Positions 11,797-56,729 of a DNA stretch of 64,000 nt are shown here, one piece after another. Numbering within the stretch: position 1 is the stretch's first letter; each line of letters starts with the position of its first letter. The notes under the pieces were generated by a model. That model saw nothing but the letters and a program-made list of their open reading frames with translations. It made no database searches and had not been told where the DNA came from. The DNA is taken from the sequence record LC727701.1; one strand, written 5' to 3'. The translations under genes and the position numbers were made by a program.

Positions 11797-20560
<8,764 letters not shown>

Positions 20561-20618
20561 ATACTTGGAATAGTTATTTATTGTAACCATTCTTAAACCA
20601 ATGTAATAGGTAATTAAC

Positions 20619-20924
20619 ATGTCTCTACTTAAAAAGATCGGTCTAGCTTTAATTGGATCAGAAGGACGTAAGGAAGTTTTTGAACAAGAATTAACTAAAC
20701 TATCAAATTCTAATGCAGTTATTGATCAAATGGTGATTAATTTACTGGGTAGTAAGAAGAAGTTAGATGACTTCCTAATTAAAGCTGAAGAAATTGATAA
20801 TAAGAAACTAGGCTTCATTAAAAATCGAGCCGAACTTATTAAACTAGTCAAATCTAAATATTCACAAGACCCTCGGGTTGCCGATGTAGTAGTGTCACTT
20901 TACATTGGTGGTTTCATTTATTGA
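20619..20924 (+). CDS. Hypothetical helical protein (101 aa)
   Basis: AGGT RBS; no terminator separates it from the gp182-like gene. Confidence 0.7.
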   Translation: MSLLKKIGLALIGSEGRKEVFEQELTKLSNSNAVIDQMVINLLGSKKKLDDFLIKAEEIDNKKLGFIKNRAELIKLVKSKYSQDPRVADVVVSLYIGGFIY

Positions 20925-20931
20925 GGTAAGT

Positions 20932-21624
20932 ATGTCTAAACCTAATCTTGAGTGGTTAGCTTCCTTAGAAAGTAAAGAAGCTAAGAGTACAGTAGATTCT
21001 TCCGATATGGATAATGATCAAAAGGAAGGTAGCGATAAGTCTCAACAAGATGAAGCTACTGAACCTGAGAAGAAAATTACTGCAACTGATGTACAAATTG
21101 CAATTGAAGAATATGCGCGTATCCGTGCATTAACCACTACTAAAGATCTTCCAACTGACCCTGAACCAGGTGATACTTATCATGTAAATGGGGTAGATTG
21201 GATTTATCAAGAAGATGGTGGATGGGTAACTATGCAAGGTATTTATGGCCATGAACATTTTGATGAAAATGGTCTAAATATTGAAGCAAGTGGTATTGAT
21301 CAGAAATCAGGTGCAACTAAACGTTATGTGGTAACTGGTTATAATGCTCAGACTAACCCAGCTGCTATGCCTGGTGATAATCTGACTGAATGTGTTATCC
21401 TAATGCAGAATGGACTTGTTCCAGAAGTTGGTGTAAATGGCCTAACTGCTGACTGTCTACTTAAAATCGTTAAAGATTTATTTGAAGGTTATCAAGCAGG
21501 CCCATTTGCATGTGAAGAGAATCAGGTAGTGATTAATTCAATGGACCGTGCTCTTAGTGCAATTCATCAACGCCTCGTAAGACGTAAAGAACAAGGTACT
21601 GAAGGTACCTATAGTGGTAATTGA
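20932..21624 (+). CDS. tad1: Tad1-like anti-Thoeris/anti-CBASS nucleotide-sponge protein with acidic N-terminal extension (gp184-like, 230 aa)
   Basis: GAGGT RBS before ATG 20932; C-terminal MQNGLVPEVGVNGL..LLKIVKD..YQAGPFACEEN..ALSAIHQRLVRRKEQGTEGT matches the recalled Tad1 signature (FQxG..NG..DLLxIVxDRLxxFQAGPFxxREN..AL..R...R...GT). Confidence 0.8.
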   Translation: MSKPNLEWLASLESKEAKSTVDSSDMDNDQKEGSDKSQQDEATEPEKKITATDVQIAIEEYARIRALTTTKDLPTDPEPGDTYHVNGVDWIYQEDGGWVTMQGIYGHEHFDENGLNIEASGIDQKSGATKRYVVTGYNAQTNPAAMPGDNLTECVILMQNGLVPEVGVNGLTADCLLKIVKDLFEGYQAGPFACEENQVVINSMDRALSAIHQRLVRRKEQGTEGTYSGN

Positions 21625-21657
21625 CATAAATGCCTCCCTTCGGGGAGGCTTTATTTC
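21624..21657 (+). terminator. Intrinsic terminator, UUCG-loop family
   Basis: ACATAAATGCCTCCC-TTCG-GGGAGGCTTTATTTC; identical 34 bp at 56729-56762. Confidence 0.85.
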
Positions 21658-21659
21658 GT

Positions 21660-21690
21660 ATTAAAAAAAATTTGAGATTTATATTACTAG
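21660..21690 (+). promoter_or_regulatory. phiKZ-type early (vRNAP) promoter
   Basis: AT-rich tract, TTTGAGAT, then TATATTAC at 21680-21687. Confidence 0.8.
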
Positions 21691-21732
21691 TGTGTAATTA
21701 GGAAACCATCTATCTAGTAAAGAGGAATCACA

Positions 21733-22287
21733 ATGAGCGTTGTAATTTTCACTGCCAGACCTATTGGTTATAAAGTTCCTGGCGCTAATTCCACTGTAAA
21801 TAAGTTTGCACTAAATACAGCTAATGCACCTAGTGTATATAGTTCTTCACCAGGATCACCAATTACTGCTCAGGAGAGTAGTTGTATCTATACACTCACT
21901 TCAAATCATGAGTTAATCGCTGGGGACACCGATAAAGATAACTCCCTAATGAGTTTCAAACTAGTGCTTGCGTATAATAACGATACAGCTAATTATCTAA
22001 TTAGTACGCAGGTTATTGATAGTATCGATAAACTAAAAGGAGTGGAAATTATTAGTGAACTCAGTTTCAGTGTAATTGATACTGGTGCACATATGATCCG
22101 TAGAGTGAATTCGATCGGTGTATGTGAGGCTGTCGCCGCTCGATGGTCTCCAGTTGCAATTGAACACGTGGCTAAAGCAACCGAGCGTGAGCACCCTGGT
22201 ACTCCCATCGGTGATGCTCGTGAGATGATCGACTCTGGTGAAGACCTGGGTGACGTATGTACTTCATATATCAAATCGAGTAACTAG
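21733..22287 (+). CDS. Hypothetical early protein (184 aa)
   Basis: AGAGGA RBS; first gene after early promoter. Confidence 0.75.
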   Translation: MSVVIFTARPIGYKVPGANSTVNKFALNTANAPSVYSSSPGSPITAQESSCIYTLTSNHELIAGDTDKDNSLMSFKLVLAYNNDTANYLISTQVIDSIDKLKGVEIISELSFSVIDTGAHMIRRVNSIGVCEAVAARWSPVAIEHVAKATEREHPGTPIGDAREMIDSGEDLGDVCTSYIKSSN

Positions 22288-54065: not shown

Positions 54066-54266
54066 ATGGATCGTCTTGATGAAAGAATCGCATTCAGTGT
54101 AAGATCGTACAAAATTTTCAATGCTCTCGCCAATGGCCGAGTTCGAGCATTGATTATTAACTTTAAAGATGGTAAGGGCACGATCATGTCTATTAGCGAT
54201 GATCGCCGCCATGATAAACATCTCTGGTTCAACTGTGGACTAGTAGACAATCCAAGGATCAAGTAA
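54066..54266 (+). CDS. Hypothetical protein (66 aa)
   Basis: AAGGA RBS; TAATG coupling to thyA. Confidence 0.7.
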   Translation: MDRLDERIAFSVRSYKIFNALANGRVRALIINFKDGKGTIMSISDDRRHDKHLWFNCGLVDNPRIK

Positions 54267-55336
54267 TGGAACAATATCTTAATTCAATTCGTTTAGTTAA
54301 AGAACTCGGTGTACATAAAGGTGATCGTACTGGTACTGGTACTCAGAGCATGTTTGGTCAACAAGAACGTTATAGTTTACGTAACAACGTTCTACCCGTA
54401 GTAACTACTAAGAAAATTCATCTTCCATCTGTTATCCATGAATTATTCTGGATGCTTTCTGGTGATACTCGTGTAGATTATTTAATTGAAAATGGTGTAC
54501 GCATTTGGAATGAATGGGTTAAACCAAATACTGCGGTATATCGTGAGTTAAATCAAGAAGAGCTTGACTCAGCTATTCTAAAGAAAGTTGGTGGTCCATT
54601 TGCCCTTTATTTTCATTGTCTAGATGATGAAGTAATCATTCAGACTAGAGATGAGTTTGAAGCTTCTTTAAGTGGTGCTGAGATATTTAGCTTTTGGAAT
54701 CAATATCCAACCATTAATATCGAAGCTACCCATGTAGTTGGTGTTAACGCCGACCGCTGGAAGTTAGTATCTACTCTAGATTTCGATGAAAGTGTGACAC
54801 CAGAACTAATTAAATATGAATATGGTAAACGACTATATAAATTGCTATTTGGTGTTAAGCCTCTAAAACTCATCGGGGGTGATCTAGGTGCCGTTTACGG
54901 TAAGACATGGCGTGATCTCGAAGATACCCGTGTGATCCCAAAACACGAGTGGGCTGTTTACGAGGCACGTGGCTTTGACTTCGTAGTTGATATTCCAGGT
55001 ACTTACATGGAGAATGATCGGTGTGTTGTAACACGTCGTATTGATCAAATTCAAGACGTGATTGATCAACTTAAGACAAACCCTGATTCCCGTCGAATCA
55101 TCGTTTGTGCGTGGTCACCGCAACTCGTTGATGAACAGGCGCTCCCACCATGTCATAGCTTCTTTCAGTTCTGGACTCGTGAACTGACGCTAGAAGAACG
55201 GTATGACTGGGTCAAACTTAACGACACTGAAGCTCAACGTATTTTCCTTGAAGGTGCGCAACCGGAAACTGATCACGCACTGTGGGATAAACTTGGTGTT
55301 CCTAAACGTGCATTGAGCTGCCAGCTCTACCAGCGT
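54266..55336 (+). CDS. thyA: Thymidylate synthase, exon 1 (357 codons)
   Basis: DRTGTGT, TTKKIH, WNEW, GDLGAVYG, SRRIIV, ALPPCH, LSCQLYQR; ends at CGT before the intron. Confidence 0.95.
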
Positions 55337-56426
55337 TAAATACTAGCGCCTTCTAGGAGCAATCCTAGTCGAATAACCTATCTAAACGGGGAAACTCTCT
55401 ATGAGACAATCCCGTGCTAAATTGACTACGGTCATAAATGCCTAACGACTATCGAAACCACTCTGAGAAGAGGAAGGGAGTAGAGTAGGACCAAGTGGTC
55501 CGAAAAGGTAGGGGTCTCTTTTTAAGAGATCGTGATATAGTCTGTCCTGCATGGAGACATGCAGCGGTTTACTTAATGACTCCGCCAGATAAGGAGGGTG
55601 TTATTAATGACGTAGCTTATGTGTATTGCCTATTCACCAAAGAAGGAAAGGTATATGTCGGAAGTGCGCGAGATTTAGTTAAGCGCGTTCAACGACATTT
55701 CAGAGACCTTAGTAATTCCAAGCACCATAACTACCCATTACAACAAGAATACGATAACGGTGAAAGATTCTCGTTAAAGTACTATCGTTGTGAAAGTCGG
55801 GAATCAGCATTTACACTCGAACAGATGTGGATAACCAAGCATGAAGAAGAAGGTAACCTTCTTAATATTGGTAGACACTCCAAGGGTGGTGATAACTTAA
55901 CCAGGCATAACCTCAAAGAACAAATCATCGAGAAGCGGAGTGATACAATACGTATCAGACTTGATGAGATTGGAGCCGAGGCTCGTCAGGAAAAGTATGG
56001 TCGACCAGGTGAGCAGAATGGGATGTATGGTCGTACTCACACAGAAGAAGTTAAGGTAGCTCTATCCGAGTTACACACGGGTAACACTTACCGTCTTGGC
56101 ATTAAAGCTAGTGATGAGACAAGAGCCAGGATGTCGGAGATAGCTTCTCAGAGAACAGGCGAACGTAATCCATTCTACGGTAAAACACATTCCGAAGAAA
56201 CCAGAAAAAAGTTGGCGGATAACAAACGCGGTATAAAGCCAACTAACTCAAACAAACTTGAAGTGGACGGTGTTGTTTATTTATCCCAGGCCGATGCAGC
56301 TAAGGCTCTCGGAGTATCACAGGGTACAATAACATACCGAATTAACAGCAAGAATCCAAAGTATTCTGGTTATAAAGTCATTTAAGTAAACGGCTCAGGA
56401 TTAACGACCCTGGGTGAACATAAGAG
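55337..56426 (+). mobile_element. Group I (IA2, T4 td-like) self-splicing intron, 1090 nt
   Basis: P1 with U-G at the 5' splice site; P2 CTAGGA-GCAA-TCCTAG; core CTATCTAAACGGGGAA..GACAATCCCGTGCTAAAT; P7 GACTA (55447)/TAGTC (55538); P9 CTGCATG-GAGA-CATGCAG; 3' end GATTAACGAC..GAACATAAGAG; splicing restores LYQR|SVDTFLGKPFN. Confidence 0.95.
55576..56385 (+). CDS. Intron-encoded GIY-YIG homing endonuclease (I-TevI/I-BmoI-like); start codon uncertain
   Basis: AYVY-x9-KVYVGSARDLVKRVQRHF catalytic domain; two NUMOD3-like repeats (GEQNGMYGRTHTEE, GERNPFYGKTHSEE); C-terminal HTH (SQADAAKALGVSQGTI). Confidence 0.9.
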   Translation: MTPPDKEGVINDVAYVYCLFTKEGKVYVGSARDLVKRVQRHFRDLSNSKHHNYPLQQEYDNGERFSLKYYRCESRESAFTLEQMWITKHEEEGNLLNIGRHSKGGDNLTRHNLKEQIIEKRSDTIRIRLDEIGAEARQEKYGRPGEQNGMYGRTHTEEVKVALSELHTGNTYRLGIKASDETRARMSEIASQRTGERNPFYGKTHSEETRKKLADNKRGIKPTNSNKLEVDGVVYLSQADAAKALGVSQGTITYRINSKNPKYSGYKVI

Positions 56427-56729
56427 AGCGTCGATACTTTCTTAGGAAAACCCTTTAATATCACGTTCTACAGTCTGCTGACCCATATGTTAGCTAACCA
56501 AATGAATATGGTAGCTGAAGAGTTTATCTGGACTGGTGGTGATGTACATATTTACTCTAACCACCAAGAACAAACCGATCTTCAATTAACTCGTGAACCG
56601 AAGGTTCTACCTACCATTCGTTTTAAAGAAGAAGCTATTGGTAAAGATATTCGGGAAATTGGTGTAGATGATTTTGTTATCGAGAACTACGAATATCATC
56701 CACACATTGCTGGTAAAGTTGCTGTCTAA
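56427..56729 (+). CDS. thyA: Thymidylate synthase, exon 2 (100 aa)
   Basis: SVDTFLGKPFNITFYSLLTHMLA, GDVHIYSNH, YHPHIAGKVAV; in frame with exon 1 after splicing (457 aa total). Confidence 0.95.
   Translation, partial: SVDTFLGKPFNITFYSLLTHMLANQMNMVAEEFIWTGGDVHIYSNHQEQTDLQLTREPKVLPTIRFKEEAIGKDIREIGVDDFVIENYEYHPHIAGKVAV

Follow-up and report, generated by a model that had tools for sequence, protein, structure and literature searches.

The gene at positions 20932-21624 of the window (the whole 64,000-nucleotide stretch of DNA analyzed here, from sequence record LC727701.1) encodes a protein in which an acidic N-terminal leader precedes a domain similar to Tad1, and it lies at the end of a run of phage structural genes. 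This arrangement raises the question of whether a nucleotide sponge is made late, packaged in the virion and injected together with the genome, as an earlier note on this DNA had proposed from the nucleotide sequence alone.

Location and Transcriptional Context of the gp184 Gene

Positions 20500-21800 of the window are 100% identical to positions 198037-199337 of Pseudomonas phage phiKZ (AF399011/NC_004629), and window coordinates are converted into phiKZ coordinates by adding 177537. The gene is PHIKZ184, annotated as "structural protein" in the phiKZ record, and its product is designated here as gp184. The features of the locus are as follows:

18518-18545, + strand: intrinsic-terminator-like hairpin after gp181 (12-bp stem, 7 GC pairs, T-run)
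18566-20560, + strand: gp182 (PHIKZ182), 664 aa, baseplate spacer protein opening the run; phrog_3181 and phrog_20401 (virion structural protein)
20619-20924, + strand: gp183, 101 aa; phrog_27341, unknown function
20932-21624, + strand: gp184 (PHIKZ184), 230 codons and a stop; comprises a leader, a module for capsid docking and a Tad1 domain
21632-21649, + strand: intrinsic terminator closing the run (7-bp stem, 6 GC pairs, tetraloop, T-run)
21680-21687, + strand: early-promoter-like 8-mer, the first in the window, within AT-rich sequence and preceding gp185 and the genes after it

The unbroken run described in the earlier note, consisting of a gp182-like gene, a 101-aa gene, gp184 and a terminator, was recovered in full. 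The three genes are all on the + strand, separated by intergenic gaps of 58 nt and then 7 nt, and the terminator scan recognized no terminator-like site between them. GAGG is present 7 nt upstream from the ATG of gp184. The closing terminator has a folding energy of -18.6 kcal/mol (z = -4.75), and none of 200 shuffled sequences folds as well. On the upstream side, the run is limited by the hairpin at 18518-18545, which ends 20 nt upstream from the start codon of gp182. This strong terminator was absent from the earlier note, and it is as strong as the one downstream from gp184.

The protein gp182 forms the baseplate spacer ring (PMC13250141), and its gene is without transposon insertions in phiKZ; the preceding gp181 is a tape-measure-like tail protein. 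For gp183, Pfam gave no match and NCBIfam no meaningful match. PhiPA3, 201phi2-1, Psa21 and metagenomic jumbo-phage contigs have retained the gene order that follows the gp181-like and gp182-like genes. In GC and GC3, the three segments of gp184 are no different from the neighboring genes, and thus there is no sign of a recent acquisition of these segments.

Early promoters of phiKZ are AT-rich conserved motifs near -10 (PMC7598289). An early-promoter-like 8-mer was taken from the window itself, at 21680-21687, and 8 copies of it were found on the + strand of the window against 3.6 expected, 6 of them with the extended AT-rich context. The first copy is located directly downstream from the gp184 terminator and upstream from gp185, and no + strand copy is found in the window 5' of 21680. 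The lack of an early-promoter-like 8-mer upstream of gp184 was thus observed as claimed. Because the 8-mer starts to appear only after the gp184 terminator, gp184 is the last gene of the structural block and adjoins a block of early type. The late motif T-A-T-G (PMC7598289) was sought before gp182, where its sole copy overlaps the gp182 start codon, and therefore no promoter is assignable to the gp182-gp184 run. A scan for sigma-70 promoters found 40 against 42.7 expected in shuffled sequences; these candidates were rejected as irrelevant, since the phage uses its own polymerases and the scan performed no better than shuffles. Judged from the gene context, gp184 is probably made late.

The Tad1 Domain of gp184

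The following segments were assigned in gp184:

20932-20970, + strand: N-terminal signal, residues 1-13, ending in S-L-E13; layout as in gp93, gp95 and gp97
20971-21108, + strand: acidic linker, residues 14-59, predicted to be disordered (pLDDT below 50), with SKE16, ATE44 and AIE59
21109-21255, + strand: small three-stranded beta module, residues 60-108, bracketed by AIE59 and GHE108
21256-21621, + strand: Tad1 domain, residues 109-230, about 13.2 kDa, recognized by profile, AF2/Foldseek and pocket residues

Scans of gp184 with Pfam, NCBIfam and PADLOC gave nothing useful, and therefore the family placement is based on searches against PDB and with profiles. PF24729 (Acb2_Tad1_hairpin) was seen only in precomputed annotations and, just below the cut-off, for P0058. 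As a single sequence, gp184 matches Tad1 crystal chains with e-values of 2 × 10−6 to 4 × 10−6 (phmmer). A Tad1 family profile built from 48 relatives matches the CbTad1 chains with the e-value 4.5 × 10−25, over residues 9-124 of 125, and CmTad1 with 3.6 × 10−23. An exhaustive search at e-values up to 0.001 yielded 1910 family representatives, nearly all of which align only to residues ~105-230.

The Tad1 domain was modeled alone, because the full-length model is weak (pLDDT 55.8) and its matches to Tad1 have an rmsd of ~16 Å. The monomeric AF2 model of residues 105-230 (pLDDT 92.9, pTM 0.81) contains four strands and two helices at 173-189 and 195-220. The top 20 PDB matches of this model in Foldseek are all Tad1 (TM 0.71-0.77), including 7uav, 7uaw, 8smd and 8kbb-8kbf, and the next unrelated match has the e-value 0.25. 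The designation of the gene as Tad1-like is thus confirmed by both the sequence profile and the fold, and the Tad1 membership of residues 109-230 is solid.

In CbTad1, mutational data link F82, N92, R109 and R113 with the binding of gcADPR and cyclic dinucleotides; cA3 binding is assigned to R90 and T97 (Li et al. 2023 preprint). These residues were mapped on gp184 by HMMER alignments. The equivalents of the first set are Y187, N197, R214 and R218. Among the 48 relatives, N197 and R214 are conserved in all, R218 is R in 45, and the column of Y187 contains F or Y in 44; N197, R214 and R218 are kept in all 20 relatives that bear a leader. The C-terminal G-T lid motif of Tad1 is kept in gp184 as well as this pocket.

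In contrast, the trinucleotide-site residues are not kept: E195 and N202 of gp184 stand in place of R90 and T97. R and T are each observed in only 7 of the 48 relatives at these columns, and E is found in 17 of the 20 leader-bearing relatives. Substitutions at the trinucleotide site are reported in 6% of Tad1 orthologues (Li et al. 2023 preprint). Since this site is not universal in Tad1, E195 and N202 bear on the ligand range and not on the family membership. Whether the gp184 branch binds cyclic trinucleotides is uncertain, and its ligand range is possibly narrower than in the crystallized Tad1 proteins.

The solved Tad1 proteins (CbTad1, CmTad1 and SBSphiJ7 Tad1; PDB 7UAV, 7UAW, 8SMD and 8KBB-8KBH) share the fold of gp184 residues 109-230, but with about 125 aa each they stand alone, while gp184 has a 108-residue leader with module and reaches the cell in the virion. 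Translation from an internal start at M101 would yield Tad1 by itself; this possibility was rejected, as the Met is not conserved in relatives.

The Leader and Its Candidate Cleavage Sites

The acidic leader, noted earlier as ~100 aa long, has about 108 residues; residues 1-116 include 26 acidic and 10 basic residues, with pI 4.26. Five S/A/G-x-E sites are present in it. SLE13, ATE44 and AIE59 correspond to the sites already listed in the earlier note, while SKE16 and GHE108 are additional. Shuffled leaders contain 2.56 such sites against the 5 observed (P = 0.08). The raw number of sites is not beyond chance and is weak evidence; it is the positional conservation that carries weight. The SLE13 column is kept in 18 of the 20 leader-bearing relatives, a site at AIE59 is found in essentially all of them (9 and 11 over two adjacent columns), and 15 of the 20 have one directly preceding the Tad1 domain. 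The leader is shared by relatives, including the Tad1 homologues of PhiPA3 and 201phi2-1. From this alignment, E13, E59 and E108 are the conserved candidate cut sites.

The N-terminal sites of gp184 (SLE13 and SKE16) were compared with those of the phiKZ ejection proteins. SLE13 and SIE16 are present in gp93, SLE13 in gp95 and gp97, and SLE11 in gp94; all four proteins are processed by gp175, and gp93 is reported to be cut at SLE-13 (PMC5694885). A scan of 105 ATG-ORFs of the window for S/A/G-L-E near residue 13 recognized, besides gp184, a single unrelated ORF whose N-terminus is different, and thus gp184 is the only true match to the N-terminal signal among these ORFs. The first 16 residues are 38-62% identical in the leader-bearing relatives, versus 16-26% for the linker, and in distant relatives the identity of the linker is 14-30%. 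The signature of residues 1-13 that is common to gp184 and the ejection proteins gp93, gp95 and gp97 is new here.

The Module and the Release Site

The small module that had been suspected in the leader is real; it occupies about residues 71-97 of the bracketed segment and has three predicted strands, at 82-85, 88-92 and 98-100 in the full-length AF2 model. With an overall pLDDT of 55.8, this model has residues 1-69 and 101-114 below 50, and the three-stranded unit 82-100 is the only folded element N-terminal to the Tad1 domain. The linker holding GHE108 is predicted to be disordered.

The capsid structure of phiKZ (PDB 8Y6V) contains "gp184" as its chain I, which is identical to the product of this gene over all 230 residues. 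Only 34 residues of this chain are modeled; superposed on the full-length model, they give a TMt of 0.82 at an rmsd of 2.0 Å. The chain is absent among the listed Foldseek matches of the residues 105-230 model. Because chain I matches the full-length model but not the 105-230 model, the ordered piece bound to the capsid is assigned to the module. This indirect, model-based comparison suggests that the module, within residues 1-104, is the part staying on the inner vertex-binding complex of the capsid, which agrees with Chan et al. Apart from 8Y6V chain I, neither the family scans nor the structure search found a match for the leader.

The claim that the leader is a propeptide stands in part. 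It has a signal with cleavage sites, but it is not only a discarded segment, as its module stays on the capsid.

E108 is invariant in all nine module-bearing proteins, and eight of them have a cleavage motif on both sides of the module, whatever the downstream cargo is. In Psa21, gp249 (91 aa) consists of the leader and the module alone, and its frame ends with the G-H found directly before E108 in gp184; no Tad1 is found within 3.5 kb of it. As Psa21 gp249 naturally ends there, GHE108 is supported as the boundary for release of the sponge. This site, not listed in the earlier note, is likely to be the release site of the sponge, and a fragment released there would be 122 residues long, about 13.2 kDa, the size of a stand-alone Tad1.

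Architectures in Related Phages

Three architectures occupy the slot after the gp181-like and gp182-like genes. The leader, the module and Tad1 are present together in phiKZ and in a 310-kb contig. The leader and Tad1 without the module are present in PhiPA3 (gp217), 201phi2-1 (gp280) and other contigs, and the record of 201phi2-1 gp280 states that it was identified by mass spectrometry. The leader and the module only are found in Psa21 (gp249).

The module is also found in a different context. PhiPA3 gp096 and the internal head proteins of ~880-900 aa in PhiPA3-like phages (P0104 and HHBS36_1 CDS0319) carry a module 54-69% identical to that of gp184 with the same bracketing motifs. PhiPA3 gp096 (54% identity) is a virion structural protein inside a gp92-gp94-like cluster. 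In PhiPA3-like phages and in the metagenomic P0104 (881 aa), the module heads a PF12699 internal head protein. The cargo after the module differs: it is a PF12699 domain in P0104, a short tail in PhiPA3 gp096, and Tad1 in gp184. PhiPA3-like phages encode Tad1 separately and without the module (gp217). In P0107 and P0082, Tad1 domains are fused to major-capsid-protein-like fragments.

The variety of cargoes, namely Tad1 in phiKZ, a PF12699 protein in PhiPA3-like phages and none in Psa21, together with the fusions to capsid fragments, leads to a tentative proposal. The 49-residue module may be a portable capsid-docking cassette, and pre-loading of sponges may have arisen more than once as a general strategy of jumbo phages; at present, this proposal is somewhat less probable than its negation. 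No earlier description of the cassette or of the P0107 and P0082 fusions was found in a limited literature search, and they are modest extensions of what is known.

Published Evidence for Packaging and Injection

The system is not little described, as had been supposed. That phiKZ gp184 is a processed, virion-carried and injected Tad1 is already published, and its loading is treated in Yang 2024, Fossati 2023, Chan 2025 and a 2026 review.

Packaging in the virion, which the earlier note had proposed, is established by the identity of gp184 to 8Y6V chain I and by Yang 2024 (PMC11297242). There, gp184 is assigned to the minor capsid proteins, as a mainly beta-stranded part of the inner vertex-binding complex that occupies the space between gp86 and one of the capsomer subunits; a large part of it is unresolved in the capsid structure. 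Cleavage by the head protease gp175, also part of the proposal, is stated in Yang 2024 (PMC11297242), where Thomas 2012 is cited for the processing of gp184.

The third element, injection with the genome, was reported in Fossati 2023 (PMC10449902) on the basis of a western blot (n = 1). Phage produced from cells expressing gp184-3xFLAG delivered the C-terminal 3xFLAG of gp184 into gentamicin-treated cells. In the same study, gp184 was found as an interactor of inner-body proteins. In Chan 2025 (bioRxiv 2025.11.23.690004), the N-terminus of "gp184/Tad1" is described as wedged in the capsid, with the C-terminus liberated and injected. The same source found the gene dispensable: transposon insertions in it are numerous, and the competitive index is close to neutral. 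According to the 2026 review, too, phiKZ injects Tad1.

Chan 2025 and the 2026 review attribute gcADPR binding and Thoeris inhibition by phiKZ gp184 to Li 2024 (Nature). In the preprint version from 2023, phiKZ is absent.

Proposed Mechanism and Alternative Explanations

Very probably, gp184 is a three-part precursor by which the phiKZ head is supplied with a Tad1 nucleotide sponge. The precursor would be produced along with the tail and baseplate genes and taken up by the prohead, where gp175 would then cut it at the bracketing sites; the choice of these sites is suggested by their conservation. Of the module, about 34 ordered residues would remain on the capsid wall, and the 13-kDa Tad1 domain would be set free inside the head, to exit alongside the DNA and other ejection proteins. 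Tad1 would thereby be in the cell ahead of any phage gene expression. The injected domain would bind gcADPR made by TIR proteins, and cyclic dinucleotides, if the ligand range of gp184 is as its pocket residues suggest.

The amount delivered is small. Yang 2024 (PMC11297242) reported five inner vertex-binding complexes per vertex, from which about 55-60 copies of gp184 per head were computed, corresponding to roughly 90-180 nM in a cell of 0.5-1 fL. This lies close to the affinities of other Tad1 proteins for gcADPR, 210-284 nM; their affinities for cyclic oligonucleotides are 10-50 nM (Li et al. 2023 preprint). With ~55-60 copies, the injected pool would absorb only a few dozen signal molecules, unless the inner body carries more. 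Any effect of the injected pool on immunity is inferred.

This small amount is one reason to consider that the sponge acts chiefly in the cytoplasm, as the newly made and uncut precursor in mid to late infection, with packaging as a side route. The precursor is necessarily cytoplasmic before assembly. Most members of the Tad1 family stand alone, with 125-140 aa and no leader (85 of 165 have 25 or fewer extra N-terminal residues), and the Tad1 genes of Bacillus phages sit among replication genes. However, different genera retain the N-terminal signal, the sites on either side of the module and the synteny of the gene with structural genes, which argues that loading into the head is selected, and injection of gp184 was demonstrated (Fossati 2023, PMC10449902). 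Moreover, no early promoter motif is present upstream, so that cytoplasmic gp184 would appear late, after the signaling systems could have fired. A chiefly cytoplasmic action is thus unlikely, although it is the alternative that survives best.

A still less probable explanation is that gp184 is mainly a structural piece of the vertex, with Tad1 as a passenger that is degraded or too scarce to affect immunity. The ordered capsid part is only the 34-residue piece filling the gap between gp86 and the capsomer subunit, Psa21 retains the leader and the module with no Tad1 nearby, and the low copy number and cellular concentration computed above point in the same direction. On the other hand, the transposon insertions and the near-neutral competitive index indicate that a purely structural role is unimportant under those conditions, and the C-terminal tag was found after infection in cells in which translation was blocked. 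The invariance of N197, R214 and R218 in the leader-bearing relatives, and the presence of the leader and Tad1 without the module in PhiPA3 and 201phi2-1, also speak against this explanation.

That the leader is itself active, as a DNA mimic or a decoy, and is not a segment for targeting and processing, would accord with its strong acidity and the predicted disorder of residues 1-69, but it is highly improbable. Conservation is poor in the linker but holds for the short N-terminal signal and for the positions of the sites, this signal also begins ejection proteins unrelated to gp184, and the leader has no family or structure match.

Comparison with Known Internal Proteins

IPI* of phage T4 is an injected anti-restriction protein. 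The T4 internal proteins and Alt have an N-terminal capsid-targeting segment that is removed after Glu by a related prohead protease (gp21), and their cargo is injected; the capsid-targeting sequence and the prohead cleavage after Glu are documented in PMC5694885 and PMC9026906. T4 differs from phiKZ gp184 in the phage family and in the cargo, and gp184 has an extra module that is retained in the capsid.

Within phiKZ, gp93 follows the same logic as gp184 according to the literature: its N-terminal piece is bound to the capsid and its C-terminal part is ejected. The cargo of gp184 is Tad1, and not the helical PF12699 domain of the phiKZ_IP family; a search for PF12699 gave no match in gp184, versus e-values of 7.3 × 10−58 in gp93 and 8 × 10−27 in P0104. 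The locations also differ, as the gp184 gene lies among tail and baseplate genes, while the inner-body proteins are encoded in the gp89-gp97 head cluster.

Implications for Nucleus-Forming Jumbo Phages

The proposal of a virion-loaded sponge, drawn from the DNA without any database search, was sound, though it was already in the literature. What is refined here is the anatomy of gp184, in which signal, anchor and cargo segments are assigned and a modular reuse of the anchor is suggested. The protein is one of the few documented anti-defense proteins of nucleus-forming jumbo phages. Signaling by Thoeris and CBASS can fire before phage gene expression, and a sponge that arrives with the DNA would close this gap.

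Beta Module of gp184 in Internal Head Proteins

The beta module of gp184 (residues 60–108) is present too in virion or internal head proteins of PhiPA3-like phages, whose genes lie within the inner-body gene cluster. In these proteins, the module is flanked by the same S/A/G-x-E motifs as in gp184. The module-bearing proteins are as follows:

L005:4461-5426, PhiPA3 gp096
L006:4851-7541, HHBS36_1 CDS0319
P0104, a metagenomic protein

The slot syntenic with gp184 in Psa21 is occupied by a shorter gene:

L012:3357-3632, Pseudomonas phage Psa21 gp249, 91 aa

In Psa21 gp249, an N-terminal signal (S-N-E13) is followed by a linker and then by the beta module; the reading frame ends at the G-H that comes before E108 in gp184. 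No Tad1 domain was found within 3.5 kb of gp249, the region searched.

Tad1 Domains Joined to Capsid-Protein-Like Fragments

In two Tad1-family representatives, P0107 (L013:1067-2107) and P0082, the Tad1 domain is C-terminal to a fragment similar to the phiKZ-type major capsid protein. These fragments match PF25620 (2.5e-20 for P0107 and 2e-09 for P0082) and also phrog_3231. A similar fragment is encoded by the ORF adjoining P0107 at locus L013, and by a 373-aa ORF located 1.3 kb downstream of Tad1 at locus L002. The fusion to a capsid-protein-like fragment may be a second means of tethering the sponge to the capsid.

Pfam Placement and Leaderless Homologues

PF24729 (Acb2_Tad1_hairpin) is listed for relatives of gp184 in precomputed tables. 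Direct hmmscan of gp184 and its relatives P0003 and P0009 gave no report even at E-values up to 10; with just 58 positions, PF24729 is a short model, and matches to it drop below the filters.

Leaderless Tad1 homologues of 126–128 aa are encoded by Bacillus phages of Herelleviridae:

L010:2366-2746, Bc431v3 orf166
L011:2342-2728, McCartney gp131

Both are flanked by SSB-like and recombinase genes, and both are annotated as "(putative) structural protein" despite these replication-type neighbours. The label is apparently propagated by similarity.

Transcription Signals Around gp182–gp184

A strong terminator was recognized at 18518-18545, just 20 nt 5' of the gp182 start codon (region 18518-18568). 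No recognizable promoter is present between this terminator and the gp182 ATG, where the sole T-A-T-G overlaps the ATG itself. Read-through and a promoter inside gp181 are both candidates for the origin of transcription of the gp182–gp184 run. The early-promoter-like 8-mer is found at these positions:

21680, 35528, 51054, 59566, 59998 and 63069 (+), six copies with a common extended AT-rich upstream context
28812 (+), 48948 (+) and 35025 (-), without the extended AT-rich context

Several of the six copies with the AT-rich context come after terminator-like T-runs.

Apparently Split Thymidylate Synthase Gene

The thymidylate synthase gene at 54266-56729 (+) appears to be split:

54266-55339 (+), ORF matching only positions 1–156 of the 266 in the Pfam thymidylate synthase model
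55327-55564, RF00028 group I intron after this ORF, full-length match, 69.4 bits
55495-56385 (+), ORF with GIY-YIG, NUMOD3 and I-TevI DNA-binding domains, inside or after the intron
56487-56729 (+), short ORF that could be the second thymidylate synthase exon

The predicted phiKZ introns treated by Putzeys (2024) are others, and this intron is not among them.

Residues at the cA3 Site of gp184

In CbTad1, cA3 is bound by R90 and T97, which correspond to E195 and N202 in gp184 (21514-21537, residues 195–202), and Glu occupies the R90-equivalent column in 17 of the 20 jumbo-phage relatives. The DNA levels of wild-type phiKZ are still modestly reduced by cA3-dependent NucC CBASS (Chan 2025). Speculatively, this modest effect on phiKZ would fit a gp184 sponge that leaves cA3 unbound.
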